A DNA stretch of 37,091 bases from Perkinsus chesapeaki ATCC PRA-425 (GCA_013115145.1 JAAPAO010000355.1:1-37091); one strand, 5' to 3'. Counted from the stretch's first letter, positions 13,801 through 35,878 are shown. Notes: a model not told the origin generated them from the sequence alone. Made by a program: numbers and translations.

Positions 13801-16800
13801 CGTTGTTGCTCATTCAGTGGTCTGCTGGCGTTGGGTAATGTTATATGTGCGCTAAGCTCGGCGATGGAGGAGAGCAGTTCGGCAACAACCGCAGCTTCAG
13901 GAGGAGGAGGACTGGGGGACTCTGCTGGAGCAGGATCTATTCAATCTCATGTAGGACTGAATGAAATCTTCACAGTGCGAAAGATACTCTTTCTAGATAC
14001 CCTATAGAGATAGCAAGTTGACTAGAATACTTCAGGCGAGTCTTTAGTAACTTCGTGGCGCGCGGTCAATTTGCCACCTTCAGGATTCATTGGGCGGCAA
14101 CTCGCGGACAGTTATGATAGCGTGTGTGTCACCAGCCGCTGCAGACTTTGCTGAGACTTATAATACTATTAAGTGAGCGAAAGTGCTTACTAATGCGGAG
14201 ATGGTATAGTAGAAATTGTGCCAGAAAATATGTTTTAAGACGAGAAGGAAACACCAGATGCATTCGTTATTGCAACATCTGATTTTAATTACTTTACTAG
14301 TGTTATTTGCTGATAATATGAAACAACATTCTCATGTACTAAAATATTTACATTTATTTACATTATGTACATGTATTATACCCTTCATTAAAGTGTTCCT
14401 CCGCCCGCCTGCTAGAGGTTGTATAAGCAACAGCGTATCGGTACACTATTGTATTTCCTTGCCGCACCTCGCTTAACTCAGTAGGATCTTGAAAAGTGGC
14501 TCAGTTGAATTTTTACTTTTGCAGCAAAGTTTAGCTCGACAAGTCTCTGATTGGCCATATGATCTGGCAACCTTGTAGCGCTATCATTCCTGCATTCTCC
14601 TCTTAAATATGATTATCTTTACCCCGAAGGACCTGTCCGCCCCGGCCCGAAGGACCCCGGGCCTTTCCGCATCATTACCCTACTTTTATGATAACAGTCG
14701 CATTTGCTTTGTGTCATTTGTCCCCCTTGTATAGATATGCCAGTCGTGCTCGGTGCATCACAAACCGTCCAGTAGTGAACACCGACCCTACCAAGAAACT
14801 GGTCATGGAGCTGAGACAGCAGGTGAGCTACCCAGCTTGGCAGCCCCTTGCTTCCCAGACACCCTCTCCGGCTTCTAGGATCCTCTAAACTAGAACGTAT
14901 TTCGCCTGACACACTGCGCGAGTATAAGCGTTCGGTGAGATCTAACGTACCGCAGCGCAGAATCATTGTCTCTAAGCTTCCCAAGTCTTTCTATAATAGC
15001 CTCCGCGCAATCATCATTTATAGCGCATATTTGATGCTCTGATGATTGTTATTAATATATCAATCATATAGAAGTCGATATAGATTGATACGGGACAGGT
15101 CAGTAGGCTCTCGACACAAAGTGAACTACTTTGGCGTGATGAATTGATTATTAAAATTTTTGTAGATACGTGACTTAACGGAGGAGAAGTTGCGCTTTAT
15201 GGGTCTGGGCAGCGGTGGAGAGGGAATGGATGAGATGCGGAATGAAATGAGAAAATGGCAACAAAAGTGAGCTGGGAAATGGCGAAGCCTCTGATTGAAA
15301 CTGAAACCTGAAGTTGATCGATAATTTAACGGGGCGCGTTGTAATGTCGTAGTGGTCCAGCAAGAATGGAACCAGTAAAGCTCGAAATGACAGTAAAATA
15401 TATTATAAAACAGTATTATCGTGGTGCACAATTACTTGGATAACTTTTTTCTTGGATCTTTTCCGAAATTTTCCGTTAAATTTTTACTAATTTTCCATTT
15501 TTTCCGACTTATATCAGGTACACCGCCTTACACGCTCACTGTGTGGGTCGAGGCATCGATCTTATCGGTGACGGTTTCGAGGCTCCTGAAGACGTAGATC
15601 TCGAGGGTAAGCTGTCGAACCGTGGATCAGAGCAGTTGATGGGAAATAATAAACGCCTGCAAGAAAGGTGAGTTGCTCGATTGGCAACAGTTGACGAGCG
15701 TGCGTGTTGCAGCTCACTTATCTTTATGCGGTGGTTGTTGGGAAATGCTATAACGAGAAAGTGGTAGAGATCATTCTTCCACTGAAATATATCTACAACT
15801 TTCTACCATATACCTATTCTTGCAGCCTTCTCTAAGGGTGCATTATCATGAGACTCGATATACCATGTGTGCAGTTGCTTTGTTTCAGAGCCCTTCTCCG
15901 CTACTTGTAAATGATACTCCCTTTACAGCTCTCAATTATGTCTCTTAACATATTAGCTAGTCGCGGCAGCTTTGTTCATTTGCGTTTCCGTCAAACGAGG
16001 AATGGCTTGAACTAGAGCTTCCCTGCATTTTATGCTTTCTATCATTATGTTAGTTTCCAAAAGACCATTAATTTTCCCTATCAATACATCTTTTTTGCTT
16101 CTATTAATACAGCTTTATTTGCTTCTATTAATACAGCTTTATTTGCTTCTAATAATACAGTTTCAATGCGCTGTATTTGTTCTCTATCGCCCGACTTGTC
16201 CTTATTATTGATAAGTTAGTAGTACAGCTTGTTGTTCCAGATGTTCGTCATTGGAAAGTCAACTGGCCGAGTATAGGGAGGTGATGGCTAAGGTGTGGGT
16301 CAGGAATAAGAAGTTGGATGCTGAAGTTGCCAAGCTTACGGGAACGACTGGTGGAGAGGACGATGCAAACGAGGTGAGAATGACGGCCTTGATGAAAAGG
16401 TTAATAGGCTTTAACTTATAGAAGATAATAAGCTATTACAGAGAGCCTTCTCTTCGCCGTAGAGCTATTGGATCCTGCCGGCCGACTTCCCAGTGGGATT
16501 CGTCATAATTATTTCCTGCGCGTTCGCTTTGGTAGCGGGCTCAGCCTGTCGGGCTGTAGAGAATTTTGCGAACTATCTTGAGCAGGATTACTTAGCTGAC
16601 ATGCGGAGTCGTTAAGTCTTGAATTAGCTGTACACTCTCTGTCGTTGTAATGCAGGCAGTAATACCTGGCACGATTCGGACTAGTACCTGCCTCAGTAGT
16701 GCGGGTATGTGGAGCAGACTTTCAGGATCTTGAATCTTTAGCTTTTCTTATCGCTTATTCCAGCCTGTCTCTGTGTAGCTCCCTCCCGAAGAGACTGGCC

Positions 16801-19800
16801 TTGATGCCTCTACTGATGGTGGAGATACTTCAACAACTGAGAGCGTGGATGACCCAAACGATCGTTTGATCAAAGTGAGGCATCCACCGGTTTGGCATCG
16901 ATTAGTATTTTTCTCAGCATCTTGAACTAGATGAGAGTAATCTGTCTGGTCTTATCGGAGCTGTTATGGAAGATAAGGAGAACGAAGTGAGCTCGAAAGT
17001 TGGATTCTTGCAAGCTCCGCCTTGATATATAGTCTCAGTTCAGTTTACTAAATACGCCTCAGTGTTCATGAACTCTCAGTTTTAGCTCTTACTGAGAAGG
17101 ACACCAAGAACTTCCCACTAAAGTGCCTCCTGGCTCGTATCATCATTCGTATTACTGTGTTTGCAAACTCGGTAGAGCATTGGCAGCATCAGCTTGCCGC
17201 ATAGCTTCTGTCGCATCAAGTTTTACAGCTGTACGTATATTGCGATAGTGGCTCGTATCTATTTGAGAGAATCATGGGCCCTTCCGGGGAATTGGAATTT
17301 CGTCGGTAATGCGGTGGACATCGATTGTTCAGGAAGGGGATCTGGCTGGAGCTGTGGAGGCATTATTGCAGGCTACGAGCAGCTGGATGGATAAAGACGC
17401 AGAAAACAGCAAAGGAGAAGATGGCCTGAAACACAGGTAAGCAAGTTAACCTATCTTGAATCTTTCTTAGTTCAACTAAAGCTTCCTCCTTTCAGTATTG
17501 CAGCTCAAGAACGGCATCTCCAAGGTCTTCGTAATGAGCATGAAACTCACTCAGCAATGCAACAGGCATATCTCGACAAGATCCACATGTACGAGCAGAT
17601 GGTCGCTAAGGCCAACAAGGAGAAAGAGGTAAAATATGAATCGCTTCGCTCCGCTAAGAGTGTATCTACTTCAGGAGTTGGCTGCCCAAATAAATGCTAA
17701 GAAAAGCGATAAAAATATGACAGAACTGCTTGAGAGAAAGTAACGACGGAGCGAAGCGATTCATGTTTACCTTCTTGTTTCGCGGCAGACAGCGGGAGAA
17801 TCAGCGGCTGTTGGACCAGCAACATAAGGAGATGCAACAGTTACGTAGGGAACTTAATAGCATCCAGAAGGCCAAGGACAGATGTGGACAGGAAGTGAGA
17901 GAATATGAAGTAAAATATTAATATGTACATCAGGTGGCACGACTGGAGAAGGAGCTTACAACGGCTAAGGGGGAGAAGGTTAAAATGCAAAAACAAAAGA
18001 AAGAGCATGATGAGGTGAGGGATAATAGATACACGGATCGTACGGAAATCCAGGCCACATTTTTCCATCTTTTTTTCGGAACTTCTATGGTGGAAAGATC
18101 GTTGGTGAGTTGAAGACGGTATTGCGCTGCTCGACTTAATTTATTGGCGGGAGATAGCAGCAGCGTGACCGTCGGTTGTTGAGATTTCGTAGTGGTAAAG
18201 CACTCACTAGACAACACTATAATTTAACGAATAGGTTTCTGTTCACTTCATATAGGGAAACTGGTAAACTCTTCACTTGAAGTTCACGCTACTGTTCTCG
18301 ATGGTTTGTGTTATTTGTATTCATATTATTATACCAAATATGAGAATCTTTCGTTGTTTTTTCGGAGGTCGAGCGTGCTTTAGGCTCATCGAAAGATACT
18401 CCAGGATCGCGACCGTGTTATTAACCAATTGAAGAGGGTCCAGGCCAAGAAAACGCTCGAGGCGAAGAAGACTGCTGATGTGAGCCCTCTAGCATCCTGG
18501 AGTCGCGGCGAGAGCTTCTTCCGGTAGAGCAACAAGAAGGCGGTTACTACATTGACGATACGAAACGAAACGTTACTGAAACAGTTAAATGCTTTGAAGG
18601 AAGCTCAGAAAAGACGTAGGCTGGGCACGGTGCAGCGGGATACCTACTACTAGTACTGTGACTGTTGTATCTGTTTCGAATGATAGGAAATATCTAGTGA
18701 TGTGATATTACTTGCCCGTACTGTATACGACAACCTATATGATACTGTAGGATGCACTACTATAACGCACCAACTCATCATCAAGGATGTCGTGCCTGTG
18801 TCATGCTCACCTACGTGTATATCGCACGCGTGACGAATACTAAGGAGCCCCCATAAAAGGAGAAGTCATCAAGCTGCCTCTCAGTGCTCCTCTAAGATGG
18901 AAGAGCGTTCCTAATACGGAGGAAAAAAGACGGAAAATATTTTCCTAGACGAGAAGGAAACATAGACGGCTTTCCTTATGGGAACGTCCGATGTTCCCCC
19001 ACGATTCCCTGCCACAATGGTGTTCCCACCTAAGGGACCGTCAGCTTTCGGCAAGCTAATATTGAATCATTTTAGACTAGTTGGGTTCAAAGGACTTCAG
19101 TGCAATAGCGCAATTCTGGAGTGCTCGTATCAATATAATATCTCACTTGGCTTCTCTAGGTGTCGACTCTCGAAAGAAATCGTTCGGTCCGCCTGGGAAG
19201 GCCCTAAAAAGGCAGCAGAATAAGCCCGCGGCAGTCCGCGGCAAAACAGGGCCGGCAACCACCGAAAAAAACGACATCAAAATCTGGCTTGATGATTTGA
19301 TGGAGAAACAGATTGCGCGAGATGGCACAGCAGAGATGGTGCGCCCGCTGGCGGGTGAGAGTTCGATAGGTTGACTTCAGGCTGAGAAGCTCTCTGAGGA
19401 GTTGGACGAGTTGGAGAAAAGATTAGATTCGCAGAGGTAGGTTTGAGCGGAGCGAAGCACAATGTTTGGGACAGACGATATATATTCGAGTTGGAGTCTA
19501 AAATGGATGACACAGAAGGAATGAAGAATCGAAGGAAGTCTCGAGAGAGATATCATGTAAGCATTTTAGAAATGAAGGATTTCCGTTTCATTCAACACGG
19601 TTGAGCATGTACGTTTGGACTCCTGTGTCGGTAGAATATGTTATGCTTTCGCATGAGGATGATATTATACCATTAATAAACAACACGATATCTGTCGGAA
19701 ATTTCACGAAGCTCTCGGCCAAAGTATTTGCTATTTGTGCAGCACTGTCCCGATTACTTCAGGCTGAGCTGTTGGATGCCCAGGAGAATCTAGACTCCAT

Positions 19801-22800
19801 GTCGGCGCAGTGGTCGGTGATGCAAAAGCGCTATATTGAGGTAAGTCTTATTCCACTTGTTCTCTCGTATGTTTTGGCAGCTGACCGATCCTGCCAACAA
19901 TTCAGCTCGCCCTGGTGACAGCCTCAAAGAGGTAAGAAAAAACTGCTTCGCTCCGCTAGGATTTTCTTCAGATTCTCTCGGTTGTGTCTAGTAATTTAGA
20001 TGTGATGGCGAAGATCTTTTGGGAGGATCTTATGAGCGGTAAGGTGCCATCCTGGAATTCGAGCCGCAAAATGGCGAGAGTGGTATGTCTTCAGCACGCA
20101 AGCGCATCAGAGATTTGGACGGACGACTGACGGAGCTTCGAGACCAGTGTTCTCGAAAGGAATCTCAACTAGCCGAGCAAAGCTCGAAAATGGCGTTATT
20201 AAGGAATGACTTCTCCAGAAGAGTATCCGAGCTGACATCACAGAGGAAGATATCTGAGCTTGCGATGATATCGAAGCAATTGGTGGATGCATCAACACCG
20301 TGTAAGATTATCGAACTTTGGCTTTCACAGTTCAAACTATGAGGCATGTCCCTAGTTGATGATATGGTGTAAATTATACCGTATAATACAAACTAGAGGG
20401 CCGTGTACTGCCTGTAGGCTGACATCCTTTGGTTAGTCCATGACATCTTAAAAATTGATTGCATTCGAAAGTATGCATCCTTTGGGTCAGGATGAGACTC
20501 CTTTGCAGTTCGCACAGCCGCTTTGTGTTCGTGTATGACACTATCATATAGCCCCACAGTACTATCTGTTCGTACTACTATATCAATATTCATTTTGTAT
20601 GCTACTGGTAGCATGTTTCATTTCAGTGCTTCCTCGTCGAAGTGGCGTTAGATCTTCTGATGTATCTCGAGATGGCTCCCCGATAGCAGTTCAAGGTCGG
20701 CAGTCAACACCCGGTCGAACTGAGGTGAAGCATATAAAGCTCGATAATCTTTACTATACGATGTCTGGAGCGCTTTTTCAGGTGTCTGAGATACCTGTTA
20801 TAAATAAGGGCACGCCTTCAGTTGAAGACGAGCTTCAAGTGCGTATTTCATACCGTATTTCCTTCTGATCTTCTTCCTATTTCAGCCCCTTCCATCTTCG
20901 CCAGTATCCCCTAGCATGAATGACATGCTTTCGTTTATGCCACTTCGTCGAAGGGGTATGAGACACTCTTTAGTTGATGATATTGAAAGCCAAGAAGTTC
21001 TAGATTTACAGTAGGGCCCATTAAGTTTATATTTATATACCTTACTGTGGAGGACACAAAAGATATCTCGAGTTCGTATCTGAGTATGAATATACAATAT
21101 CACGTTTTGTCAATGTAAAACCCGGCGGAGTGTGATGTTTTGTATGTGGCTTACTAACACCAGTTGAACTTTTACGATCCTTCCTGGTGGTAGAAGCGTT
21201 CGCCAACTCTAGTTCTCGAACTCTGAGTCCTCTGGATTGTAAACCAATTCTCATGTATCCTCCTCGTGGATCGTATAAGCCAGACTCATAGTTCAACATA
21301 AGTGTTAATTATTATACTGCTCCTTCATATTAGTGTAAGTAAGTTTCTTTATTTAGGTCACAAACTGTCTACCAAGAGGCTCTTCTGTCACGTACTCGCT
21401 CTGAGCACATAAAGGCTTTGCAGGACAGAATTGAAGAGCTGGAGGACATCAACGTGAGTCTGAGCCGGAAGTTAATGACAGCTGAAGAGGAAAAAGAACT
21501 ACTGCAGAAAGAGAGGGGAGGACAATCAGGCTCGGTGAGTTGAAACCGTCGTGAACTCCGCAGCTCTCGTTTCAAGGTTGAGCGAACAGCTTCGATGAAA
21601 GCCACAAAGCGAGCCAGACTGGCGCAGGTGACAAGAACGACAGAGTCAGCAGATTATAAACGTGAGAATTAACAGACTAAGACTCGAGTTGGCTGGCAGC
21701 AGGTTCCCAACCAATACGGAAATGGAGCGTCGAGAATGAGAACGATGGAGATCGAAAGAATATAGAAAGGCCGTTTGAACTCACTCGAAAAGGTGAGGAT
21801 TAGAAATTGGAGTTGATGATGGTCCTGTTTAGGATCTATGGCCGATTTGCGAATGGGGGAAACTCTTTGGGGAGCTGACGATTCTACTGCACCGTGAGTT
21901 TTATAGATGACATCCGTGGGATTCGAACCTGCGCTTGTAGTTGGTATTGCACCCATCGCGAAAGGGATGCCCACGAGTACTTCCTTACAAGCTGTTGCAT
22001 GACTGAAGGCCCTTCCCTCCACCTTTGGACTGGCAGCATGGGAAACATTCGAGTTTGGGATCTCGGTGGCCGACCAACTCAGGTATCCATCTCGACCTCG
22101 GAAGTTTCGGTCCAAGCTGTCGGGTCCTCAGATCAAATCGGTCCCCATATCTGCTGGAGGGCAGAATATTATTGTGAGGAGTATGTGTGCTATTGACTGC
22201 AACCTAGTGGCCGCTGCAGTCTCCAACAGTGTCAAAATAATCGATAAAAGTAACTCTCAATGGGGCCTATTTGTTTATTCCATTGCCAGGGTGTCCCTCC
22301 CACAGTTGCTGTGTTGCAACCGTCGCTACCGGTGAGAGTAAGGACGTCTGCCAAGTAGCTTTAGTGTAGACATCTACCACTGCCCGTAGATCACTCACTC
22401 CCCGCTGCTCAGGCCTAATGGTGGCGCCAAACATTTGGCTGTGGCATGTTCTGGACTTAGACTTTACGATTTGCGGACATTCGAGGAGCTCGACCGAGGC
22501 ACCAAGCGAGAGTCGACGTGACTCGCTACTATTTTCTGTTAGCGATTTATTGCAAGTGTTTTCAGAGCATCGGATGCGACAACACCACAGTATGCTAAAC
22601 TTCCTAGTGGGCAGATGGACCTCTTGGCGGTAGTAGCATCGGAGGACTCCAAGCTGTTCGCTGGTGGAAGGGAGAAGACGGTGTGGAAGGATTTGGTCAC
22701 CATTACATATTCTCTTGTTCAGATACGTATGTGGACTGATCCCACTAGGACGCTATCGGCTCAAGTGTAAGACTGTGGCTATGCTGTCCTATGCAAGCCT

Positions 22801-23341
22801 GATCGATCAGATTCCAGCCTCCTCACTTTGATGCAGTTTCATGCTTACAACCCATTGAATCATCTTACCTAGTCAGCGGCTCCCGTGATAAATTCCTAAA
22901 ACTATGGGAAGTCGGGAGCCAGCCCTCCAGCCTCTGTTGTAACACTCTTTGCAGGTACCCACATCCAAGTCAGTTCATAACGATTCAACTTTGCGCACAA
23001 TGAGCCGACAGTGCCTTGCTAGTGTTCAAGCTCACAGTGATTGGATTACAGCGCTCAGTCTGGTGGAGGTGAGACTCGAAGCTGCTGCTGTTTGCACATG
23101 TCTGAAGGTACCCGATAAAGCCTTGGGCCCGAGGCTTATATCAGCTAGCCGAGACGGTATTGTTAAAATGTGGAGCCTCCAGTGCGACACCGGCGGGCCT
23201 TCTCTTAAGCGAGATTACGCTTCTCGCCATTCCAACGTAAAAGCCGGTCACCGCATCTCCACACAGCTTGTTTTAGGGCCCTATTGCCGGCGTTACTTCT
23301 TGTCCCGAAGCCGAAGGATTGTTCGTGACCGTTTCACATGA
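10849..23341 (+). CDS. Kinesin-4/KIF21-like protein (N-terminal motor, long coiled coil, C-terminal WD40 repeats), many exons
   Basis: Motor motifs: [26 protein letters not shown]|[34 protein letters not shown] (about 13215), FVDLAGSER (about 13392), [22 protein letters not shown]|[23 protein letters not shown]. Coiled-coil exons lie at 15.5-21.5 kb. WD40 exons include [28 protein letters not shown] and [12 protein letters not shown]. The last exon and stop are uncertain. Confidence 0.88.
16094..16163. repeat. 24-bp tandem repeat, about 3 copies, intronic
   Basis: TTTGCTTCTATTAATACAGCTTTA at 16094 and 16118, with a variant at 16142. Confidence 0.9.
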
Positions 23342-24834
23342 TCGCTCCTTCCGTGTATGGAAGAAGAATAATTCAATAAATAGCATTTAACTAGTTCTCC
23401 AATTCAAAGATTAATGTTTAGTTTTGGTATATAAAGTGATGGTCTTGCATAATCTTTGCCCATGGCTGAAACGTGGAAAAGATCACGGGAAACTTTCCAA
23501 CTGTAAAAAAAGAAAGAACGAAGAAAGCAAGCCAAAACGGGTCTCAAGATCACCAATTCGGCGAGTAGGAAATTCACTCCGAACAAGGACATCAATTTAG
23601 CGGCAGTGCCACTACCGCAGTGGTCAGAGAGGGAAATCAATCTCACGGATAAGGACATCACTCTCACGAAAAATGATCGCAATCTCATGGGCACGTCTCT
23701 TTGGGGTTGTAGTTTCAACTACACACAAAGAATCTTTGTACTGCTGTACTTGCACAACGTTATGTGAACGAATCCTTCCCGTTGCGCGGAAGTATCCTCC
23801 ACGAAGATGCTCATGATCAACCTAATGATTAGGCTTGTGACAATCCGCTTGCCAGAGGCTGACTCCGCCTATTTGAATGACCTCTTCGGACGGCTCGTAG
23901 GCAATTGACCACTTGTGTTGAACAGTGAGGTGGTCTTCCGTATTAAACGCCCATAACTCGGTGGAAAATGTAATTCAAAAGGCATTACCATCAATGAGAT
24001 GAATAGTCTCGTATGATGTGGATACTAGAGCGACAATCGCCGCTCTGGCTATCTACTGTCTAGGTGCTTCAATACGAGCGGGCCTGTGCACGGTTATTGT
24101 GACTGCTAGCCGCATTGCGTGCTGAAATGTCGCGTTGCACTGCATGAAAAATCGCTGACATTTCTTTTCCGAGATAGAGCGAGTCAAGCTGGCTTGGAGG
24201 ATAATCGATATTACTTATCGTAATCTATGGAGAATCCGCTAAAGAGTAAATTAAGTCGAGATTCGTTATACTCGAAGAGATTTCTATTCGCGTGCAGTGC
24301 GGACTCCGCACGCCGCGTTTCTAAATGCCTCGTACTGAATTTGGTGAGCTTCATCAGACAATCCAAGTTGGATTGTCGCTGTATGATTTCGCATGTTCGA
24401 CAACCTATCCGAAGTATACACGGTGACAATCTCATTCGACTACCAACTCGGTAGCAGTAAGCAGCAAGTAGCAACAGCGGTAGTTCTCCACCTCGCAGTA
24501 CAAGAATGTGCTCAGCACAATCCATTCGCTAGTGACTCTTGGTTCTAGGCGTGCTGTGGTACAGTTACTGTGCCTGTAGGACTACTTGCTGGGACGTACA
24601 TGGAGAGGACTCATCGGCTGCGCCTCATTGACTGCTTCTAACTGGGAAACTAAGTCGCTGAGACCTAGTTATCTGAGCGAGTTTGTTTCACCGTGGAAGC
24701 TCCACTGAACCAGATTGAAGGAGGGGTTCCAGCAGGACCTCGTAGTCAAGGTTAACTTCCTAAGCATGCCTCGGTAATACAGAGTCAGAATGGAATAGCG
24801 GAAGTTTTAGGTGTGAAGGGTTACCCTTTTATAC

Positions 24835-25815
24835 ATGTTGCATCGCTGCTTCGTTCTCGGCTGTGTCCTTCCCTTGAACATCGCTAATCTCGGTGTAACT
24901 GGCGCTTTTCCTGTAAACGACCCTTTATATTGGCAGCAGGCCCCATACCTAGAAGCTGTTAATGTCACGGGAGCATGGAGGCGTCTGCATGCCTCGGGAG
25001 TGGTTAGAAAGAGCGTTACGGTAGCCCTTATCGAGACCGGAGCTCAGATGGATCACCCCGACTTAGTTGCAAATCTTGTAGAGGGCTATAATGTTATTGA
25101 TGGTAGCCACAACACTGACGATATCGTGGGTCATGGCACTGCAATGGCCGGAATACTTGGTGCTACTATCAACAACAAGGTGGGTATGGCTGGTGTTATG
25201 GACTTGGTTAATATCATGCCAATTTCCGCAGTTGGTCTTCAAACCCCGCAGACTTTGTCAGCTGGTATAGACTATGTTATAAACAACAGGGAAGCGAAAG
25301 GCATACAGTTTATATTGTTCCCTTTTAACTACGATGTGATTGAACCCTACTTGGCCGACCAGTTTAAACGAGCGGACCAAGCTGGAATCCTTATCATCGT
25401 AACAGCTGGAAATTTGGGTAAGGATATCACCACGGAAAAGAGGTACCCCTGTGCTCTGACTGAACAGTTCAGTTCAGTTTTGTGCGTCGCTGCGACAGAG
25501 CAGTCGGAAATGAAACTGACATATTCTGCTAATTTTGCGGATTACGTGGACGTCGCTGCACCAGGCCTTCGAATTATGGCGACGGGACTCTATAATACCT
25601 ATAAACCTGTGCCGGGTTCCTCCGCATCATCTGCTATTGTTGCTGGTGTGGTTGCGATGCTCTACAGTCTTGATCCAACTCTGTCTCCCGCTGATATCAA
25701 GAAGATCATCAAGGAAACTTCCAAGAAAGGGCTCACTGATCACACTGGAAAAGTCGTTTTTCCCTTCGGTCTAGTCGACGCAGAAAAAGCTGTGGCGAAG
25801 CTGATACAGGGATAG
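24835..25815 (+). CDS. Secreted subtilisin-like serine protease (peptidase S8), 326 aa, intronless
   Basis: Hydrophobic N-terminus; VALIETG (Glu67 at the usual Asp position), GHGTAMAG (His100), TAGN (oxyanion Asn193), DVAAPG, GSSASSAIVAGVVA (Ser263). Confidence 0.95.
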   Translation: MLHRCFVLGCVLPLNIANLGVTGAFPVNDPLYWQQAPYLEAVNVTGAWRRLHASGVVRKSVTVALIETGAQMDHPDLVANLVEGYNVIDGSHNTDDIVGHGTAMAGILGATINNKVGMAGVMDLVNIMPISAVGLQTPQTLSAGIDYVINNREAKGIQFILFPFNYDVIEPYLADQFKRADQAGILIIVTAGNLGKDITTEKRYPCALTEQFSSVLCVAATEQSEMKLTYSANFADYVDVAAPGLRIMATGLYNTYKPVPGSSASSAIVAGVVAMLYSLDPTLSPADIKKIIKETSKKGLTDHTGKVVFPFGLVDAEKAVAKLIQG

Positions 25816-25989
25816 GCTACCTCGATATGATACTGCGCGTGCTGCTGTGCGGATCATTCCTAACATATCTTCAATTGCTTCAATTGACGCGACATATATT
25901 CTTCAGTAAGTCCAAGTGAATCACAATAGATGGCTTTTCTCGGATCATGAGGTAGCCAGCGAAAATGCTCTTGAGTGAGAGATTCTCAG

Positions 25990-26730
25990 GAGAATCTCAG
26001 ATTAGTGACCTTGTCCGTCAATAGTAATCAGTCTTCGTCTCTGAGCCACTTTATGTGTCTGCGCTGGAGCGCACGAGTGCTTTCAAAGCACTGTTTTGCT
26101 TGGGCCGAGCTATGGCCGTTGTTCATCAGTGTAAGTATCGAGGTTGTAGGTGGGCTTTAGTGTCTAGCTAGTTGGTGCTTTGGTTTGTTGAACCCCATCA
26201 TATACTGGTGAGTCATTTTCATATTGAGACCGTAATGACTTTGAGTTTAGTTCAGGGTGACAACGGAGCAACTGTTCGTAAGTGTTCAAACGGGTGTGCC
26301 AGAGCGGGAAGTCAATTTAAGTGACTTATTCTCAAAGTCTCTTCGGAAACCACAAGGTCGAGGTGCGTTCTCGGAGAATCTCTCCTGGATAGATCCGAGC
26401 AGTGGAGTGCCTGGCGAATACTGCCTTCTGAGGACGTGCCACGTCCTCCGAAGTATGATAGTTTGCACCAGTTCTGTCTTCTATTTACATTGAGCTCTCA
26501 CGTCAAATATTGCTGTTGCCTGCTCTTCTATACCTCTACCTACATGGATTTAGGTTTGCAGGTCGTTCCCAAAGTCTGGGCTCCAGACCGAGGCGTTACT
26601 GACAACGTCGATATTCTATGTTATATTGAGTAACACCTTACGAAGATTAATTAGTCTGGCATAATATCCCTAGCACAAGCTGCACAATGCCTCATCACAT
26701 GATAGCAACTGCTGAAGTTACTGGTAAGTG
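25990..26730 (+). other. Unidentified multi-exon gene or gene fragment
   Basis: Regularly spaced GTAAGT/GTGAGT donors and AG acceptors, with short open exons such as VFVSEPLYVSALERTSAFKALFCLGRAMAVVHQ. No family recognised. Confidence 0.3.
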
Positions 26731-26795
26731 AACGCTCACCAACGAGAGGAATTATAATATACTATATATATCAAATAGTGTATAACAGTTAAACC

Positions 26796-26993
26796 GCTCA
26801 GCAATACCCACACCCAATAACTCTTAAAAGAGTTAATGGTTCATCGAAGTCGAATACATTATTGTATTGACTAAACCTCCATTAGGGTGGAAAGGTATAC
26901 AACTCCTCATCACGGTTTAGGGTTTTGTCAAGAGTACTCTTGTGAACGAAAGGAAATCACTACATAAGTGATCCTGTTCGAGTACAGTCGACA
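26796..26993 (+). repeat. Dispersed repeat, copy 1 (inverted relative to 34542-34753)
   Basis: About 200 bp aligns by eye at roughly 90% to the reverse complement of 34542-34753. Weaker similarity continues to about 27085 and about 34441. Confidence 0.92.
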
Positions 26994-27249
26994 TACATTA
27001 ATAGCACGGAGACGCGTTATTGGGGTGAGAGTTGAGGGAAGTGTGGTATGACTGATCACACAATCTTCTGTCCCTCAACGCGCTTCTTGTGGCAGGTCGA
27101 CCAGAGCACAGTACAGTGCAACGGCTTTAATAGCTGGTGTGGCACCAACTCAGTGCTGCAGCACTTGTATAATTCTCAAGGGTCGGCGACATCGAGACCT
27201 GTTCTTGAGGTGTCGCAGGATCCATTAAGCCTGGTAGACCGATCCACTA

Positions 27250-28420
27250 AGGATTGGTATAGGTGACGATGGATAATAATAAGATTTTCAACGCGCTCCC
27301 TGGACGGTCCAAAAGCATAACTATCTCATAAAAACGTCCAACAGCAGGGTCCCAAGATCCCAGCCGTCCGAACCATCCAAGACTCGACAGAGAGTGAAGG
27401 CCTAGAGGACTACAGTACTGGCGACAGACGAATACCATCGTGTCTTTCTCGTTATTACAGAACGTTCCAATCGGTATTTCAACAAGTACAACGGGGTAAC
27501 GGGGTAACGGGGTAACTACATCGCCTGCTTTATGGGTGGCTCTACGATAGTAAAACTGTTTACATGCTATGCCTTCAAGTTGAATTATCAACTTCATAAG
27601 GAGCTTTCTGGACCTTGCGAGCACTGGTAAACTCTTACGCACTTCATCGAGATCAATGGTGACAGGCTTATGCGACGCAAGTGACATTTGGACTAAAGCT
27701 GAAATAGTCCTTCGATGATTTGAGGGTCTCTAAAGAGGCGATAGCCACTGACAGGAAGAAAAGTTTTATTTCCTTCGAATTTTCTTAGAAAATTCGTCTG
27801 TACGCAGGAAAGCTGCAGTTGTTCGAAGAATTAAGCGAGTGTGACCAGCATAGAACTGGAGGTATGGATTGGAAATTCAACTTCATCTTCGGACTCCGGG
27901 GTTATCGACTTAACGTACTTTCACAGGATGCTTCGTATATGGCACTGCGTATCCCAAAGAGTGTATGCACGTATAGTGCCTTGCGAGTTGCAAAGATGAA
28001 ATCTGTGCGATTCAGACCTGTGCTTATGGCTAGTATTTCACTCATCGTGAATGAGAAGCCCAATAATACTTACTCACAAACTCTTGTATGACAAAGGACC
28101 GAGCTTCGGTCACCGAAGAGCCCGAACGGTGATCCGAAGGGGGGTCACAGTTTGGGACCTCGGTGGCGACTTCAAGTAGCCATCTCGAACATGGAGTAAT
28201 TCCTTAAAACCGCTTGAAGTGACACATCCCATTGGAAGGTTACTTGAACCAACTCAGTTGATAGCTGACAGTTGGTAGTCGGAGTGTGACATTCAATGTT
28301 GGACAGTTGAATGTCACATGCATCACGTGGCGTACTTTACTTTTCCACACAGTCTACGTTGAGTCGTTCATAAATTTAGTTTACCTGCAACTTCATAACC
28401 ACGTAGACTAGGATAAAATG
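27250..28420 (-). other. Unidentified multi-exon gene
   Basis: Minus-strand GTAAGT/GTAAGA/GTAAAC donors with short open exons such as WLLEVATEVPNCDPPSDHRSGSSVTEARSFVIQEFV. The frame could not be assembled end to end. Confidence 0.3.
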
Positions 28421-28894: not shown

Positions 28895-29528
28895 TCACTG
28901 CTTGTACATACATAGGTTCGGATACCCCTTCCCGTAATTCTGGCAGTACGCGTTCTTCGGGCAGTCCTGAAAGAACAAAAACTCTTGATGACTTTCTACA
29001 GCTCAAGTTATCTACCTTCTCCGAGGAGCACGGGATTCCGCAGAGGTACGTCGAACCGATTTTCATGCACTCTGGGGACTCCTGGGGGTGGAGAGGGCAT
29101 TTGTGCCCACCGGCACAATTAGCTGAGCATACGGCTCCGACAACTACATCGTCTTCCTGAGTTCCAAAACGCATCAGTGCGCGCTGTTGAATATCGTCTC
29201 ACAGTGTATGTAACCGGGGAACAAGGTTTCTCACACGAGCATTCGTGACCCTCGGCGTCACACTTACCAGTTGGCTTGCCGTAGCACGGGCCTAAATATA
29301 GATGCTGAGAAGTTGCATCACACAGCAACCGTAGTATGTAGATAATCTACAGTAGATTACCCGGGCTATTCAACTGCGGCCTGACGGAAGGATGCCTGAG
29401 AAGATTCTTCGCCGTCGAGGATCTCAAACAGTCTCCTACCAGTATTCGCCAGAGCGTTCGTGAAACACCAGTTCAGTCGCAGCACAGCTGAAGGTCGTAA
29501 CAAAGAAGATCATTTGTAGCACCGGCAT
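28895..29528 (-). CDS. Small secreted cysteine-rich protein, about 6 exons
   Basis: Signal-like MPVLQMIFFVTTFSCAATE, then exons ...YLGPCYGKPT / EDDVVVGAVCSANCAGGHKCPLHPQESPECMKIGSTYLCGIPCSSEK / DCPKNAYCQNYGKGYPNLCMYKQ*, with GT-AG introns. The middle exon phases are uncertain. Confidence 0.65.
29337..29358. other. Perfect 7+8+7 hairpin-type scar, X=TGTAGATT (in an intron)
   Basis: TGTAGAT AATCTACA GTAGATT. Confidence 0.85.
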
Positions 29529-30390
29529 AACGGTCAACTGATACGAGGATTGCACTTACTTACGCTGAATCGACCAAGTGTACATAGACGATGACTATAG
29601 TCAATGACGAGCTTGATGCAAACCTATAGGTCGAGCCCCGAGGATGCCGCCAATCGGGTGTCCCCCACCGGCGCAGAGGTTCCCATAGAACAGAAGGCAT
29701 CCTTATCAGACGAGTAGTGGTAAAGAAATAGACCGCACTTGGTCGAACGTCGCGAGGCAGTCCGCCACCGCTTGCAGTCTCTTAGCCAGAATCCAGCTAT
29801 GCGGGAGTCTGTGATTGCGGTCACATCGCCAAAATTCAGCTATGAGGGCTGTTTCTGGTTGCACTGTCTGCTGCGTTAGAAAAGTCCGGCCTCGGGTATT
29901 GTCGCGTGCTCGTGTATCGTCGGTTGAATGCGGAGCTTGTCAGACAGCGACTGTCTGTCTTTCGTTCTCCGGCACACGGGGTGTTTTGGAGAAATAGTAA
30001 TCCGCATCTCGGTCACGCACGCAGGCATACCGCTTCCGGTTTCACATGTACTGGGGAGAATCTCACTAGTAGAGTTGATGTCGGTGATGTAGCTCGGCTC
30101 CGCTTATCATTCCTCATGAGCCACCACATACCCACTCTTGAGCAGATTCTTGAGGGGGAAGGAATATAAGTCTGATAACTAATAATGTATAGTTCGATAT
30201 TCCCTGCATCGCGTTCCAAGCTGTTCGTTTTCCGTGATACGAACTCGCCTTGCGAAGAAGTAGATAATATTTCTTTGTTACACTGTGGTATTAGGGATGT
30301 TGTGCACCAGGAGTAACTTCTAGCTCAGAGCTTATCAAGGGCACAGAAAACCCTAACGAATGCGTGCAACTGTGTAGATGACATGGTACA

Positions 30391-31485
30391 TCAATAACGA
30401 CTGATGTATATTTGTCGGACATCAGCCCCGACAGCATCATCATCAACGGCTACCAATTCAGGTTGAACGAACTCCTCATCCGCCGCTTCCTCGAGTGCAA
30501 CCAAGTCTTGCATTTGCGCATTGTAAGCCGCAGCCATGTCATGCAATATGCAGCTTGCAGTGAACGCCGAAGGTAGCCTCGCTAGGGATGATCTCCAAGG
30601 ACGACTCAGACATTGGAATCGCATCTTCAGCCTCCCAAAGGTTTGCTCTATTATAACCCTGGCTGCACAAATTGCCTTCTGAAATCTCCGCTGGCTTTGG
30701 CCTAGACCAGGTACTTGATGCGCCCCAAACGGAGTTAGGCAGTAAGGCCTACAAGGGTATGCCGAGTCTCCAATCGCGCAGTACGGCTTGAGGTCAGTCA
30801 GTATCCCGGGGAGGCTACTCTCATCGAAAATTCTAGCATCGTGAGTGCTTCCAGGGAAAGAGCAATCGAAATACCGAATAGTGCCGTCTAGGTCGCAGCA
30901 TACCATAGCATTCACACTGAACCAGCCTTTTCGATTTATGTACGCATCACCGTACTCATCCGGACGCCTTATCGGGAGATGAGTGCCGTCCACGGCTCCT
31001 ACCACCATAGGCATGCCACGCCTTCTCGCAAACGCAATGCTTGACCTCTGTGCCTCCTCGGGGCTGAACCAACGAACCCATTTCGTAAGTAACTGAGGTT
31101 TCGATAGAGCATCCAAGCCATCTTTCACATGCCTCCACGCTGTCATGGGCAAGAGCCGAGTTTCCTGCCCTACATTCCAATAAGAATTTCCAGTTGCTAG
31201 ATACTGTATCGTCAAGAGCACTTTCATAAAGGGCAATACTCCATTGCGGCGGCTCTGTCTCACTTCAAGATACGGAACAACCTCTCGGAGAACCTCCAAT
31301 GCACCGGCCTTCGAGAAGCGGAAGTGCTGATGAAACTGCAATTCACTCAGGTACTCGAAGGGATTCTGCCCATCATGAAGTGCAGGCTGAATAGCTACAG
31401 CATTCTGGCCTGCTACTTGAGGAGGAACTGCGGCGTAGGGCACACCTTCTTCATCAGAGTCGCTTTCTAAGAACTCGTAGTTCAT
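30391..31485 (-). CDS. Harbinger/HARBI1-like DDE transposase (DDE_Tnp_4), 364 aa, intact
   Basis: FxxHFRFSK, LLTIQYLATG, GAVDGTH (D), YINRKG, FPGSTHDARIF, IGDSAYP (D), RVIIEQTFGRLKMRFQCL (E). Confidence 0.95.
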   Translation of the reverse strand: MNYEFLESDSDEEGVPYAAVPPQVAGQNAVAIQPALHDGQNPFEYLSELQFHQHFRFSKAGALEVLREVVPYLEVRQSRRNGVLPFMKVLLTIQYLATGNSYWNVGQETRLLPMTAWRHVKDGLDALSKPQLLTKWVRWFSPEEAQRSSIAFARRRGMPMVVGAVDGTHLPIRRPDEYGDAYINRKGWFSVNAMVCCDLDGTIRYFDCSFPGSTHDARIFDESSLPGILTDLKPYCAIGDSAYPCRPYCLTPFGAHQVPGLGQSQRRFQKAICAARVIIEQTFGRLKMRFQCLSRPWRSSLARLPSAFTASCILHDMAAAYNAQMQDLVALEEAADEEFVQPELVAVDDDAVGADVRQIYISRY

Positions 31486-31580
31486 GTCTTTGATAAATGA
31501 AAAGCAAGAGCGGTTTGTTGTGTTGAGAGAGGGATTGGGGGAGGGTGATTCAGCTTTTTCGGTTTCCAGCTAGCAACTAC

Positions 31581-32551
31581 ATGCCTCAGCAGCAGTGGTC
31601 GATGGAGGAGTCGTTGTGCCTACTCAGTATTATAGAAGAAGGAGGGGATTGGATTAAGTCTGTCGGAGGAAATCTGGTTATGGCCGACCCTGCTAATTGG
31701 AATGTTGTGGCCGAGAAGGTGAATGCTACAATGAGATGCGCGTACGAGCCTAAACAGTGCCAGAAGAAATGGGAGTCCCATTCGTTGTCCCATTATGGGA
31801 CAACTTAAAGACTAAAACTAAAAAGTATGCAATCGCAATTGCTAAAGACAGGAAGACTACCGGAGGCGGGAAGGCGATTCCGAGGGATGCCGTATGCGAG
31901 CGGACTATCGATATTGTTGGACGAAACCATCCGACTTACTTCCAGATTCCCAACGCTACAGACAGCCATTCTGGTAGCACACCTAAGTCTGAGGACTCTG
32001 GTTCGAGCGGTAATAGTAATGGGAGTGTTAATGGCGGGAACGATGACATGAGTCTCGATAACAGTCCTGAGATACCCGACATCCGCGGTGAGGGAGAAAG
32101 GTCTTCCGGGAGCAACTCTAGCCTCCCAGAAAAGTCTTTGGTCGAGCTTGACGTTCCATCTGTTACCCCGTCTATTGAATGCGGGCTTATTAGAGCTGGA
32201 TATAAGCTGCAGAGTTCCTGCCCTCCGCCAGCAGTTCGTCCTTTGGATGCTCTACGAGAGAAACGTGCTCGTGAGGACAGTGAGGAGCATGAGTGCAGGA
32301 TGAAGCTTCTTCGCAAACAGTCCGAGCTCTGCAATCTGGAGATAGAGCTTGTCAGGCAGAAAATCGAAGCACATAGCAAAGCAGAAGAGAAGGTCTCTGA
32401 GCTGCACCAGCTAAAGCGGACAGTTGCTGAGTGGAAGAGGAAGCTACTGGAGCATGAAACCGCGGAGAGGACCCTGCGAGTTCGACATGCCGAGGAGGAG
32501 CACAAACTCCGCATTGCTGCTTTGCAGCCGCAGCCTACTGGACTCCAGTAA
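31581..32551 (+). pseudogene. Harbinger Myb/SANT-like DNA-binding protein, frameshifted by a 26-bp insertion
   Basis: WSMEESLCLL...WNVVAEKVN...CQKKW continues as DNLKTKTKK...DRKTTGGG in another frame. Removing 31775-31800 gives one 945-bp ORF (314 aa) with a C-terminal coiled coil. Confidence 0.88.
31768..31804. other. Compound hairpin-type scar, X=AATGGGAC
   Basis: AATGGGA GTCCCATT C GTTGTCCCATT ATGGGAC AAC. Confidence 0.85.
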
Positions 32552-32572
32552 ATGGAGACTCCATTATGGAGT
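32551..32572. other. Perfect 7+8+7 scar, X=AATGGAGT
   Basis: AATGGAG ACTCCATT ATGGAGT. Confidence 0.85.
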
Positions 32573-32887
32573 TTCCAAACCACTTCTTGATATTTGAATT
32601 ACTCTCTTTTTTTGCGCATATAGTGTTGTAGTAGATTTTTTTCGTTAGTCCTATGGAGAAGTATCGTTCCATACGTTAAATATCTATGAATGAATGTGTT
32701 TCGGATCTGAGTCTCATATTATGAGCATGTGTGTTTGAGTGGTGATTATGCGTTGAGTTCAACCAGTCGGCGCGGGTTTGGGACTCAAACTTTGAGTAGA
32801 AATCATGTCGCGCAAACCGGGATGTTGTGTTACTCTACATGTATCGTTGAATGCCAAGCCTGCATATCAAAAGCTTCGGGGCTTCCG

Positions 32888-32959
32888 GTCTTGTGGCCTA
32901 GCCGATAGAACGTCGTGTTGTCATTCACATGGTTGCTGGTTCGATCCCACGTTGCGACA
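32888..32959 (+). pseudogene. Degenerate tRNA-like sequence (72 nt, GTC in the anticodon loop); pseudo-tRNA or SINE head
   Basis: A-box-like TGGCCTAGCCG, B-box GGTTCGATCCC, partly paired acceptor and anticodon stems with several mismatches. Confidence 0.5.
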
Positions 32960-32972
32960 GTTCTAATTCGGA

Positions 32973-33253
32973 CGCCTTAAGGAGGGTCTTAGCTGTGTCT
33001 AAGCTGGGTCCGAGCTGGCTTACGCTCCTTAAGGTCCTCATGTTAGGAGCTTAAGGAAGGATCCACATATGTTACAAGTAGAGGCTCCTTGCGGTCCTTC
33101 CTTAAGGAGCTTGGCTTAGGACCTTAAGGTCCTCCCTTTAAGGACCTAACCTTAGGTCCTTAGGGTCCTTGGCCTCCTATGTTACAAGGTGATGCGCCTT
33201 CCTTAAGTAACTTAGGCTCCTTCCTTAAGGCGCTGCTACTATGTTATAGGCCC
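32973..33253. repeat. CCTTAAGG palindrome array; transposon-end-like
   Basis: Five perfect CCTTAAGG (about 32975, 33028, 33100, 33122, 33223) plus variants, three TATGTTA(C/T)A motifs, and a 13/14 inverted repeat at 32973-32986 and 33219-33232. Confidence 0.85.
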
Positions 33254-34242
33254 TATGTCACATAGCTAGCAGTGAACTGCGCAACTACGAACGTCAAGGC
33301 GAATACTATTCTCGCGTCAACCGTTCGCGCAAGGATGTCCTCGTTTTCGTATCTCTCAGCCAGGCTGGGTCAGTCTGGATATGAGCCAGGGTCCGCCTAC
33401 TCGTTATGGCAGATATCATAACCTCTAGGCTATATCGGCTAATCCACTTCCTACCAGTCACCTGAAATCCTGTCAGTACAAGAGCTACCGCGTCGCGCGC
33501 CACAATACTTATGCATATCCCACCTCTCTAATGGGACGGTCAGAATCTGCAACTCAACCAATGACAATTTCGTCAAATTTACACTAAAAAACGCTTAAAC
33601 GCTACTTCGAGCTCGCCTATATCGGATAAGTATCCAAACAACCTGGTTTTGGTCCATACTTGTGGTGTCATGCTAACGATCACGAACGCACAAACCAATC
33701 AAGAGAGTTCTTCTATTAGGCTTTTCATCATTCCTCGAATGCTGCTCGTTATATTATCCCCCTTCATTCTACTTTTCAATAACGATAACTGTTGATAACT
33801 GACCGACTTTGGTCAGCGGTTCGCTAGACTGCGTTAAGACCGTAACTGGGGACGCATTTCGGCAACCAACCCAAGATCGCGAGCGAGCTTCTCTGGAACG
33901 CGCATACACGGCTCCCCGAGTATGCTGGCACATCCTGAGCTTCTGAAGTTCAGCTTCAGAATATTGAAATCTTATAGTCCTACACTTATAGCAACACTCA
34001 AAACCACTCTGGCAGAATGAGAGTCCCACTACACCACATCAGAGCTTCTGATAGTCAAAACATCAGTGTGGAGTTAATTCTCTGCTCTTCTCGAGTAAAT
34101 CACATGTCGGTCTGAGACGGTCGATGTTGTGTTGGACTGGGAACACTCACTGTATGATTCAGTACTGGACGAGTTGACGGCGAGTGAAATTGCAGTGTGA
34201 GAGGCTCTTACACTGTAATTTACTCGGCTCTTACTAAGAGCC

Positions 34243-34264
34243 GACACTGACAGTGTCACACTGT
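34243..34264. other. Perfect 7+8+7 scar, X=GACACTGT
   Basis: GACACTG ACAGTGTC ACACTGT. Confidence 0.85.
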
Positions 34265-34304
34265 CTCAGTTGGGCAGAGCCACACTGTCTCAGTTGGGCA
34301 GAGC
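34257..34304. repeat. 24-bp tandem duplication
   Basis: CACACTGTCTCAGTTGGGCAGAGC occurs twice. Confidence 0.95.
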
Positions 34305-34541
34305 CCTAGAATCAGCCCCTTCGGCTGCATTCATATCACAATCGGGAATCTTATTTTGAATTGTGCTATCAATACAGCTAAGTTGGTGCTTAGGCTAGTA
34401 ATAGGTGCTCGACCCAGTTTGGATCAACGAAGTGCATCGGAGAAGACCTCGCTTGTGTGGCACAGGTTGTGTTGACAGCCAATTTACAGTAGACTTTACT
34501 CGACTCTTAGCCATATGAGGCGTCTCCATGCTAACGTTCCT

Positions 34542-34753
34542 TGTCGACTGTAGTACAGTCACTGTACCCGAACAGGTTCACTTATGTAGCGATTTCCTTT
34601 CGTTCACAAGAGTAATCTTGACAAAACCCTGAACCGTGATGAGGAGTTGTATACCTTTCCCCCCTCATGGAGGTTTAGTCAATACAAAAATGTATTCGAC
34701 TTCGATGATCCATTTACTCTTTTAAGAGTTATTGGCTGTGGGTATTCCTGAGC
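34542..34753 (-). repeat. Dispersed repeat, copy 2 (inverted copy of 26796-26993, with a 14-bp insertion)
   Basis: By-eye alignment to 26796-26993. Confidence 0.92.
34546..34567. other. Perfect 7+8+7 scar, X=GACTGTAC
   Basis: GACTGTA GTACAGTC ACTGTAC. The paralogue at 26982-26989 has a single 8-mer. Confidence 0.9.
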
Positions 34754-34911
34754 AGCTCGGCACTACCAGGTGTCGATAGTCAGTGTTCTCATTAGGAAAA
34801 ATGATGAACCACCCGTACAGGTTATCACGGTTATAATAAAACCACCACAACTAACAGGTGAGTTACAAAGGGATGTGTGGTCATATAGCAGTAACTCCCC
34901 AGATTAATTCC

Positions 34912-34984
34912 TGGTAACGATTCTACATGTAGAATCAGTGTTAGCGAAATTATCACGCAGAGTATTGTGTGCTTGGAGCACTAG
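34912..34984 (+). repeat. Terminal direct repeat, copy A1 (at least 73 bp)
   Basis: Identical to 37019-37091 up to the window end, and contains the perfect 18-bp palindrome GATTCTACATGTAGAATC. Confidence 0.95.
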
Positions 34985-35643
34985 CCTGGTACATGCGTTC
35001 AACTAGCCTAGCGAAGTGGTGCAAGCTAGAGGTATATAAACTTAGGACTAATAGATTTGTGATCTAATTGTCGAGTTGACGGCATCAACTCGATGAGACG
35101 TTTTGTTATCTTGTCGAAGGCTGCACGCCTTGTGACCCAGTTTTAGCTGTACGCTATAAATTATGATTATATTCGTATTTTGAGGTCACTAAATAAGAGT
35201 TAGTGCTCTGTGGACGGTTTCTAGTGAACCTCCGCGTCCCTACTCTACATAGAGAATACACTGTCTGTAAATGTGTTTCTTTGCATTATCCAAATGCTTC
35301 CATAAGTCATTAGTTTTCATGGAGATGAGTTACAAAGATGGGAAACCGATGTTGAATCAACATAGTTGAAGCATAATAGTATTGTTGATCAATGTTTGAT
35401 TCCTGTGTCATCAATGGGTTATCGGTGACGACTTGTCACAGTTCTGACATACACCACTATTAGTTGATTTCAACTTAGTGGAGCTCCGGGTTTCAAAGAC
35501 GCGCGGGTAGTCAGATCCACCCGAAAGTAATCAGCGAAGGCTCCTGCCTAAGCAAACCAAAGCTAGTGGAATCCATTAAATAGATCCCATTGTTCCAAGT
35601 CGCGCACCCCATAATAATCGATAGCTAAACTTAACGTTGTATA

Positions 35644-35665
35644 ATCTCTTCAAGAGATTCTCTTG
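35644..35665. other. Perfect 7+8+7 scar, X=ATCTCTTG
   Basis: ATCTCTT CAAGAGAT TCTCTTG. Confidence 0.85.
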
Positions 35666-35856
35666 TATATTACTAATGCCGTCAGTAATACCATATCACT
35701 TATATGTGAGGGGCGAACAACTCAGAGTAATATGATATTATTATAATGATAGTACCATTTGCGGCAAATGATTCGCCGATTCTCAGCAAGTTTAATGGCC
35801 TGATCTGTGTAAATTGTGTAATTGTGTGAATTGTGTAGAAGCCGGGTTTGGAGACT

Positions 35857-35878
35857 TGCTCCAATGGAGCAGCTCCAT
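35857..35878. other. Perfect 7+8+7 scar, X=TGCTCCAT
   Basis: TGCTCCA ATGGAGCA GCTCCAT. Confidence 0.85.

Follow-up and report, generated by a model that had tools for sequence, protein, structure and literature searches.

Stereotyped 22-bp inverted-repeat scars in Perkinsus genomes as probable footprints of transposon excision

The genome of Perkinsus chesapeaki, a parasite of oysters and clams, carries a recurrent 22-bp scar in which an 8-mer, X, is followed by its own inverted copy and then by itself again, always in the arrangement X[1-7]+revcomp(X[1-8])+X[2-8] and for a net gain of 14 bp. We describe this scar in the full contig JAAPAO010000355.1 of assembly GCA_013115145.1 (37,091 bp, hereafter the window) and in further loci of P. 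chesapeaki and P. olseni. A published paper gives P. chesapeaki as the source of the JAAPAO accessions, and NCBI protein names are in agreement. The scar is probably what remains after a cut-and-paste transposon, one that duplicates 8 bp of its target and closes its flanks as hairpins on leaving, has inserted and later been excised; the likeliest candidate for such an element is one from the hAT superfamily.

Scar geometry and frequency

All of the scars that an initial annotation had listed in the window are present: six perfect copies, one copy with a single mismatch (32776), two with two mismatches (32705 and 35349) and a compound form (31768), and the first 29 kb are indeed free of perfect copies (Table 1). 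Its tally of about ten for the interval from about 29 to 36 kb falls short by six degraded copies, starting at 32536, 32558, 33937, 34822, 35564 and 35756, and its confinement of the scars to that interval holds for the perfect copies and not for the feature itself, degraded examples of which lie upstream. At one place two scars overlap, the third part of the scar at 32536 having served again as the target for the scar at 32551.

The geometry is fixed at a unit of eight bases. When the unit length was varied from 5 to 12 across the window, all six perfect 22-mers fell at L=8, none was found at L=6, 7 or 9-12, and the three perfect matches at L=5 lie near chance level; for the 22-mers themselves, chance would supply about 1e-4 per window. 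The window holds six perfect, six one-mismatch and nine two-mismatch sites, against 0, 0.03 and 0.1 per window in order-1 Markov shuffles, so that the comparison of arm lengths with shuffled sequence proposed in the initial annotation comes out in favour of the 8-mer geometry. A looser test for a hAT signature, in which a 6-nt core must recur at a spacing between 2 and 30 and the outer base on either side must be complemented, gave enrichment in the window at a spacing of 8 only (7 versus 0.6 expected) and no instance of the classical two-base hAT footprint.

To this we added six further P. chesapeaki loci (L002-L007, 113.7 kb) and two P. olseni loci, all fetched via paralogues of a subtilase gene, which brings the Perkinsus DNA scanned to 180.6 kb, or about 0.3% of the genome; the sample is biased to subtilase neighbourhoods, and genome-wide totals are extrapolations from it. 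Perfect L=8 scars number 28 in all: 25 in the 150.8 kb of P. chesapeaki (window and L002-L007), three in the 8.6 kb of P. olseni locus L008 and none in the gene-dense 21 kb of P. olseni locus L009. At none of these loci is there a perfect match at L=6, 7, 9 or 10, and the 180.6 kb contain neither even-centred triples, X+rc(X)+X (L=5-11), nor mixed odd and even triples (L=6-10). For P. marinus no orthologue was returned, and the scar scans cover P. chesapeaki and P. olseni; the P. olseni L008 region has one place on record and no second assembly for comparison.

Alongside the perfect copies stands a graded series of imperfect ones. Across the 150.8 kb of P. chesapeaki we count 25, 18, 23, 45 and 126 sites with zero, one, two, three and four mismatches, respectively, where phase-shifted patterns run as controls on the same real sequence return 0, 0, 0-3, 8-15 and 72-91. 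Together with the shuffles, these controls rule out a chance origin of the scars, of which some 100-150 are recognisable in about 151 kb, or roughly one per kilobase. A flat mismatch spectrum of this kind would be expected if scars were produced steadily and then decayed neutrally. One match of the series, at 25452 within an intact subtilase open reading frame (ORF), may be due to chance.

Table 1. Scars and associated features in the window (positions counted from its first base)
Feature	Coordinates	Strand	Evidence or remark
Span with older degraded scars (starts 6442, 20366, 23602, 26077, 28097)	6442..28118		
Intact U3 small nucleolar RNA gene (copy A)	26792..26991	-	Rfam ACEA_U3, 102.9 bits; protist-type
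Perfect scar, X=TGTAGATT	29337..29358		Pattern and unit-length scans
PIF/Harbinger DDE transposase	30391..31485	-	Pfam DDE_Tnp_4, E=1.3e-32
Compound scar (+26 bp), X=AATGGGAC	31768..31801		Palindrome analysis
One-mismatch scar, X=TACTGGAG	32536..32557		Mismatch scan
Perfect scar, X=AATGGAGT	32551..32572		Scans; found in S2 contigs
Two-mismatch (aged) scar	32705..32726		Mismatch scan
One-mismatch scar	32776..32797		Mismatch scan
Two-mismatch scar	33937..33958		Mismatch and spacing scans
Lone odd-centred palindrome, centre 34234, arms 10	34224..34244		Palindrome scan
Perfect scar, X=GACACTGT	34243..34264		Scans; S2 contigs
Perfect scar, X=GACTGTAC, 5' end of U3 copy B	34546..34567		Scan, alignment
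Two-mismatch scar	34822..34843		Mismatch scan
Two-mismatch scar	35349..35370		Mismatch scan
Two-mismatch scar	35564..35585		Mismatch scan
Perfect scar, X=ATCTCTTG	35644..35665		Scan; S2 diverged copies
One-mismatch scar	35756..35777		Mismatch scan
Perfect scar, X=TGCTCCAT	35857..35878		Scan; S2 diverged copies

Empty sites, ages and distribution

Each scar is a 14-bp insertion relative to its empty site. The initial annotation had put the net gain at 14 bp and called for empty and filled sites to be compared; two empty sites were found, each differing from its scarred counterpart by exactly that length, and no filled site, with an element between two copies of X, was seen. The first empty site is internal to the window, where an intact gene for the U3 small nucleolar RNA (copy A) is accompanied by a degenerate second copy (copy B, 34558-34757, plus strand) with which it shares 94% identity. 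Copy A holds a single GACTGTAC, in the context TGTCG ACTGTAC TCGAAC, while copy B holds the 22-mer at the equivalent place, the gap between the two in alignment being exactly 14 bp; copy A is thus an empty-site control for the 34546 scar. Because the Rfam U3 consensus also begins with a single GACTGTAC, it is the scarred state of copy B that is derived. With its 5' end disrupted by the scar, copy B scores 52.4 bits, under the gathering threshold. Read depth over 34600-34799 is about ten times that of single-copy sequence, and U3-like sequence is therefore multi-copy in the genome; an Rfam scan of the window returned U3 and one transfer RNA.

The second empty site is found in another isolate, represented by Logan contigs of a separate sample and study (S2, 2022). 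This sample contains copies of the region around the last scars of Table 1 that have diverged by about 4%, at about four times single-copy depth, and sample S1 is without them. The diverged copies lack exactly 14 bp at 35858, leaving a single TGCTCCAT, and a diverged contig runs ungapped through the scar at 35644, its sole gaps lying at 35601 and 35858. The scar at 35644 accordingly appears to be common to the diverged copies and older than the split between them, and that at 35857 to be younger than the split. The scars thus span a range of ages, in keeping with the graded mismatches above.

A geometry as rigid as this can signal software or library chemistry, and the initial annotation had named an assembly or polishing artefact as a possible undoing of its reading. 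The contigs of S2, an independent build from another sample and another study, match 30000-34661 with zero letter differences and with a single gap, of 1 bp at 34316, away from the scars; since they carry the scars at 31768, 32551, 32776, 34243 and 34546, the scars in this stretch are not products of one assembly. Scars occur, moreover, in assemblies of two species, exist in mutated copies and avoid coding sequence. We regard an assembly, polishing or library artefact as having next to no probability.

Avoidance of coding sequence is visible in the densities obtained from gene tables and scar positions. Counting scars with at most one mismatch, intergenic DNA carries about 0.55 per kb and genic spans about 0.11 per kb, the latter within called genes that are rich in introns; siting of this kind is to be expected, because an insertion of 14 bp shifts the reading frame. 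The initial annotation had favoured local hopping or a hotspot near 29-36 kb. That suggestion does not survive the wider survey: the scars are genome-wide, the interval exceeds the average scar density of intergenic DNA by a factor of only about 2.5, and it is a gene-poor, transposon-rich contig end and no special hotspot. On a rough estimate, five scars within 1.3 kb of locus L004 and the overlapping pair at 32536 and 32551 lie marginally above Poisson expectation.

Palindrome anatomy and the origin of the scars

The internal structure of the scar bears on how it formed. Its first and last 15 nt are each a 7-bp palindrome around one base, complementary to X8 and to X1, respectively. The same bias extends beyond complete scars: over all loci, palindromes with arms of at least 7 are odd-centred in 118 cases and even-centred in 16 (about 7:1), and those with arms of at least 9 in 17 and 2, when random sequence would yield both kinds equally often. 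A one-base centre is what results from a covalent hairpin whose initiating nick lay one nucleotide inside the flank. Snap-back priming requires a loop, and palindromes centred on one base are for this reason not its product.

These features fit the following sequence of events. Insertion would duplicate the 8-mer X as a target-site duplication (TSD). At excision, the transposase would nick one nucleotide into each flank, and the freed 3'-OH would attack the opposite strand to leave covalently closed flank hairpins, the left one reading X1-7, X8', X7'-X1' and the right one its mirror image; with the nick placed in this way, the single base at the palindrome centre would be the complement of the flank-terminal base. 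Host nucleases would then cut each hairpin several nucleotides away from its tip, giving 3' tails that bear the inverted TSD. Complementary over the TSD alone, the two tails would anneal in register, and trimming of the overhanging flaps and filling of the gaps would produce X1-7 + revcomp(X) + X2-8, a gain of 14 bp. The transposon itself and its hairpin chemistry are what we infer from the scars. The initial annotation had likewise proposed a hAT-type excision with 7+8+7 annealing across an inverted TSD; its geometric part is borne out, by a TSD of exactly 8 bp, an odd centre with the flank base complemented and a single-copy empty site, and the agent is unseen. Its further supposition, an opening of both hairpins precisely at the TSD base, is unnecessary. 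Any pair of tails that overlap would yield the identical product, which would account for the uniformity of the scars, and one observed tail is 11 nt long.

That tail belongs to a small set of variants in which the ends seem to have been joined without annealing. The compound scar at 31768 reads AATGGGA GTCCCATT C GTT-GTCCCATT ATGGGAC AAC: an untemplated C separates the left tail, 8 nt long, from the right one, which measures 11 nt and begins with 3 nt copied from the right flank (AAC); the right palindrome of this scar, centred at 31794 with arms of 10, accordingly reaches 3 nt into the flank, and the net gain is 26 bp. At L003:4486 the layout is ACGAAGC GGCTTCGT CTTCGT CGAAGCC, tails of 8 and 6 nt having been joined blunt, again without annealing. 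There are also lone odd-centred palindromes, their arms 10-14 nt long, as at 34234 in the window and at L004:9541, and the former, which adjoins the scar at 34243, is a candidate one-sided footprint. Among products with fully templated tails, a spacer of 8 nt was found 26 times and one of 14 nt once, and spacers of 2-3 nt are about as common as chance predicts. Read in this way, the hairpins would have opened at a distance from the tip that varied and was often 8-14 nt, a pattern that suggests repair by nicking away from the tip and microhomology-mediated joining, not by tip opening of the Artemis and non-homologous end joining (NHEJ) type.

More complex structures are present at L005:14741-14809 and L004:19945-20027, where several palindromes are combined with extra direct repeats, and where the odd-centred pairs have arms of 11-14 nt and stand 22 and 33 nt apart. 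These may be nested or repeated events; a model with a single TSD does not fit them.

The mechanism class to which we assign the scars, hairpin-derived palindromic hAT footprints joined via microhomology, is known. Ac/Ds elements in plants, Saccharomyces cerevisiae and Candida albicans combine an 8-bp TSD with P-nucleotide palindromes and microhomology joining; the centre of their footprint palindromes is likewise the complement of the flank-terminal base, and in yeast the arms reach up to 20 nt (PMC5873905; PMC1978519). Ac/Ds footprints are, however, heterogeneous, with 28 types among 128 events in C. albicans and P-insertions mostly of 0-3 nt, whereas nearly all recognisable events in Perkinsus are one 22-bp product in which the whole TSD is inverted. 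Unlike Ac/Ds footprints, moreover, the Perkinsus scars have accumulated naturally to about one per kilobase, and the element behind them has not been seen. Coding joints in V(D)J recombination, made by RAG hairpins and Artemis, resemble the scars in that flank hairpins opened off the tip yield palindromic additions. RAG nicks exactly at the boundary, so that its palindromes are even-centred, and its P-runs are a few nucleotides long; the scars also need a TSD, and V(D)J recombination, which has none, leaves no forward-inverted-forward triple. The literature searched, with primary papers on Ac/Ds footprints in yeast outside its coverage, yielded no description of Perkinsus scars or of genome-wide palindromic footprints. 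What appears to be new is a near-exclusive single product with the whole TSD inverted, at about one per kilobase in at least two Perkinsus species.

Several observations weigh against a hAT element, or any resident transposon, as the source. No element with an 8-bp TSD and terminal inverted repeats (TIRs) beyond chance was found in 180 kb, one scan for such pairs returning two matches, which equals chance expectation; at about 0.3% of the genome, this is a weak negative. Nor is there a filled site, X-element-X, in the same 180 kb, or a hAT domain among 100 ORFs of the window, where the initial annotation had already reported no visible hAT transposase, 10 large uncalled ORFs of the other loci and the Pfam lists of called genes. 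Because neither an element nor a hAT domain was found, the assignment to hAT is drawn from geometry. Classical short hAT footprints, with spacers of 2-7 nt, are not detectably enriched, and a density of about one scar per kilobase is, to our knowledge, far above any natural hAT activity reported. The target 8-mers are equivocal as well: a T in position 2 or an A in position 7, as in the hAT preference nTnnnnAn, occurs in 22 of 56 cases at 28 sites (39% versus a background of 27%, p=0.03), a weak preference, and the centre positions are G/C-rich. Finally, the one-nucleotide offset of the nick is documented for hAT, and other uncharacterised superfamilies with 8-bp TSDs could share it.

Two candidate elements were considered and set aside. 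The segment 22949-26563 has an 8-bp direct repeat, TTGCAGGT, and TIR-like ends that agree in 11 of 14 bases around 3.6 kb that include a subtilase gene; the number of such matches is that expected by chance, and the arrangement is probably a coincidence. A 95-bp repeat shared by four loci has neither TSD nor TIR.

The same insertion and excision could have been carried out by an element of another superfamily with 8-bp TSDs, such as Merlin/IS1595-like, 8-bp Mutator-like or Zisupton elements or an undescribed hairpin-forming family. No hAT was seen in 180 kb, and Merlin, with TSDs of 8-9 bp, has related transposase ORFs reported in P. marinus, yet the Perkinsus Merlin copies are reported without identifiable TIRs or TSDs (PMC8101967). 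The Mutator-like element Muta1 likewise forms flank hairpins and has TSDs of 8-9 bp, but its hairpin is symmetric (43+43 nt), from which even-centred palindromes would be expected, none of which appear among the triples here, and in yeast it excises precisely in more than 90% of cases (PMC5499845). Merlin and Mutator-like TSDs usually vary from 8 to 10 bp, whereas scars with a unit of 9 or 10 bp are wholly lacking in our scans. We think another superfamily rather unlikely.

An origin without any transposon, by template switching or by snap-back synthesis with polymerase theta, would also produce an inverted triplication. Like the scars, insertions of this type add an inverted copy of neighbouring sequence; in formal terms, a template switch with two jumps would account for a forward-inverted-forward product, no element has been found, and an endogenous process would more easily reach so high a scar density. 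Against this, such insertions vary in length and position, need a loop of several nucleotides and have neither a fixed 8-nt unit nor a single-base centre, and the empty sites GACTGTAC and TGCTCCAT offer no pre-existing quasi-palindrome that could guide a switch. The unannealed two-tail variants at 31768 and L003:4486, moreover, resemble two joined ends and not one copying track. On this evidence we find template switching very unlikely.

A host nuclease that forms hairpins, possibly a domesticated one, might instead produce the scars, for instance by removing, in a programmed or defensive way, elements that the sequenced stage lacks. Ciliates, which like Perkinsus are alveolates, use domesticated transposases to remove germline elements; the uniform product and the absence of a visible resident element would suit such a process. 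Nuclear dualism is not known in Perkinsus, however, and since the scars decay by point mutation, with a flat spectrum, and at least one is apparently common to copies about 4% diverged, they are inherited and not remade in each generation. Two hairpins that both carry X still need a prior 8-bp duplication, and with it an insertion. We judge a host nuclease acting in this way highly improbable.

Footprints of insertion and excision thus remain the probable explanation, with a hAT-superfamily element as the likeliest agent. It is unlikely, in our estimation, that the driver is something other than an ordinary hAT family, such as an unusually hyperactive hit-and-run element or a transposase-derived host nuclease, whose hairpins would be repaired near-deterministically and in a manner unlike the Artemis and NHEJ route known from plants, fungi and animals.

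The surrounding contig and the meaning of the scars

The only transposases detected in the window by a domain scan are a PIF/Harbinger DDE transposase and a tyrosine recombinase fragment. The former belongs to a single-copy element at 30385-33263, which holds the intact DDE gene and a Myb/SANT-like second gene; Harbinger elements make TSDs of 3 bp and are for that reason not the agent of the scars. The Myb-like gene (a Myb_DNA-bind_4 match) shifts frame between two overlapping ORFs at the 31768 scar, and the NCBI model over it probably calls a false intron that bridges the frameshift. The element appears to have inserted into a short repeat at 30330-30384 of very high copy number (depth 12-100x), because other copies of the repeat run on into the sequence that starts here at 33264; an S2 contig has about 30379 joined to 33258. 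No other copies of the Harbinger transposase were found, and hence no paralogous comparison.

The recombinase fragment, a weak phage-integrase match in an ORF at 36388-36708, lies in about 2.1 kb bracketed by a 77-bp direct repeat (34908-34984 and 37015-37091, 99% identical) that contains a perfect 18-bp palindrome, GATTCTACATGTAGAATC. The bracketed segment is possibly a Crypton- or DIRS-like element that continues beyond the end of the contig. Tandem repeats occur elsewhere in the window, at 4241-4448 (unit of about 62 bp) and at 10156-10397, where AT-rich 24-bp units flank a 98-N assembly gap (10196-10293).

The subtilase gene of the window (24835-25815, plus strand) belongs to a subtilisin (Peptidase_S8) family that is also present in loci L002-L007, with at least 30 single-exon paralogues, often in tandem, whose nearest ESM Atlas neighbours are bacterial. 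Near genes of this family lies the conserved element of about 95 bp noted above (L002:12882-13004, L006:11794-11903, L003:575-674 and L005:6612-6701), with an internal stem, ATAGTCTAAC...GTTGGACTAT, and a CA-rich end; a small RNA gene and a regulatory module are among the things it could represent.

In most genomes excision footprints escape recognition, being short and heterogeneous, and the history of cut-and-paste transposition is in consequence invisible. The Perkinsus scars, by comparison, record both the target 8-mer and its place, and their decay gives an approximate age, so that excision rate and target choice can be measured from them directly; on a rough estimate, the mismatch spectrum suggests that scars arise at a rate of the order of one per 50 point substitutions in non-coding DNA. 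They are a major source of indels and break genes and RNA genes alike, here the Harbinger Myb gene and a U3 copy, and they carry a warning for annotation, in that scar frameshifts may mislead gene models, as they probably do over the Myb gene. As clean presence or absence markers they could serve the phylogeny of strains and species. More broadly, the pattern suggests an unusual repair of hairpin-capped breaks in a parasite of commercial shellfish. Were the driver something other than an ordinary hAT element, the scars would represent a pervasive and ongoing +14-bp mutation, tens of thousands strong by extrapolation, and the genome would hold a complete fossil record of its excisions, such as no other genome is known to keep.

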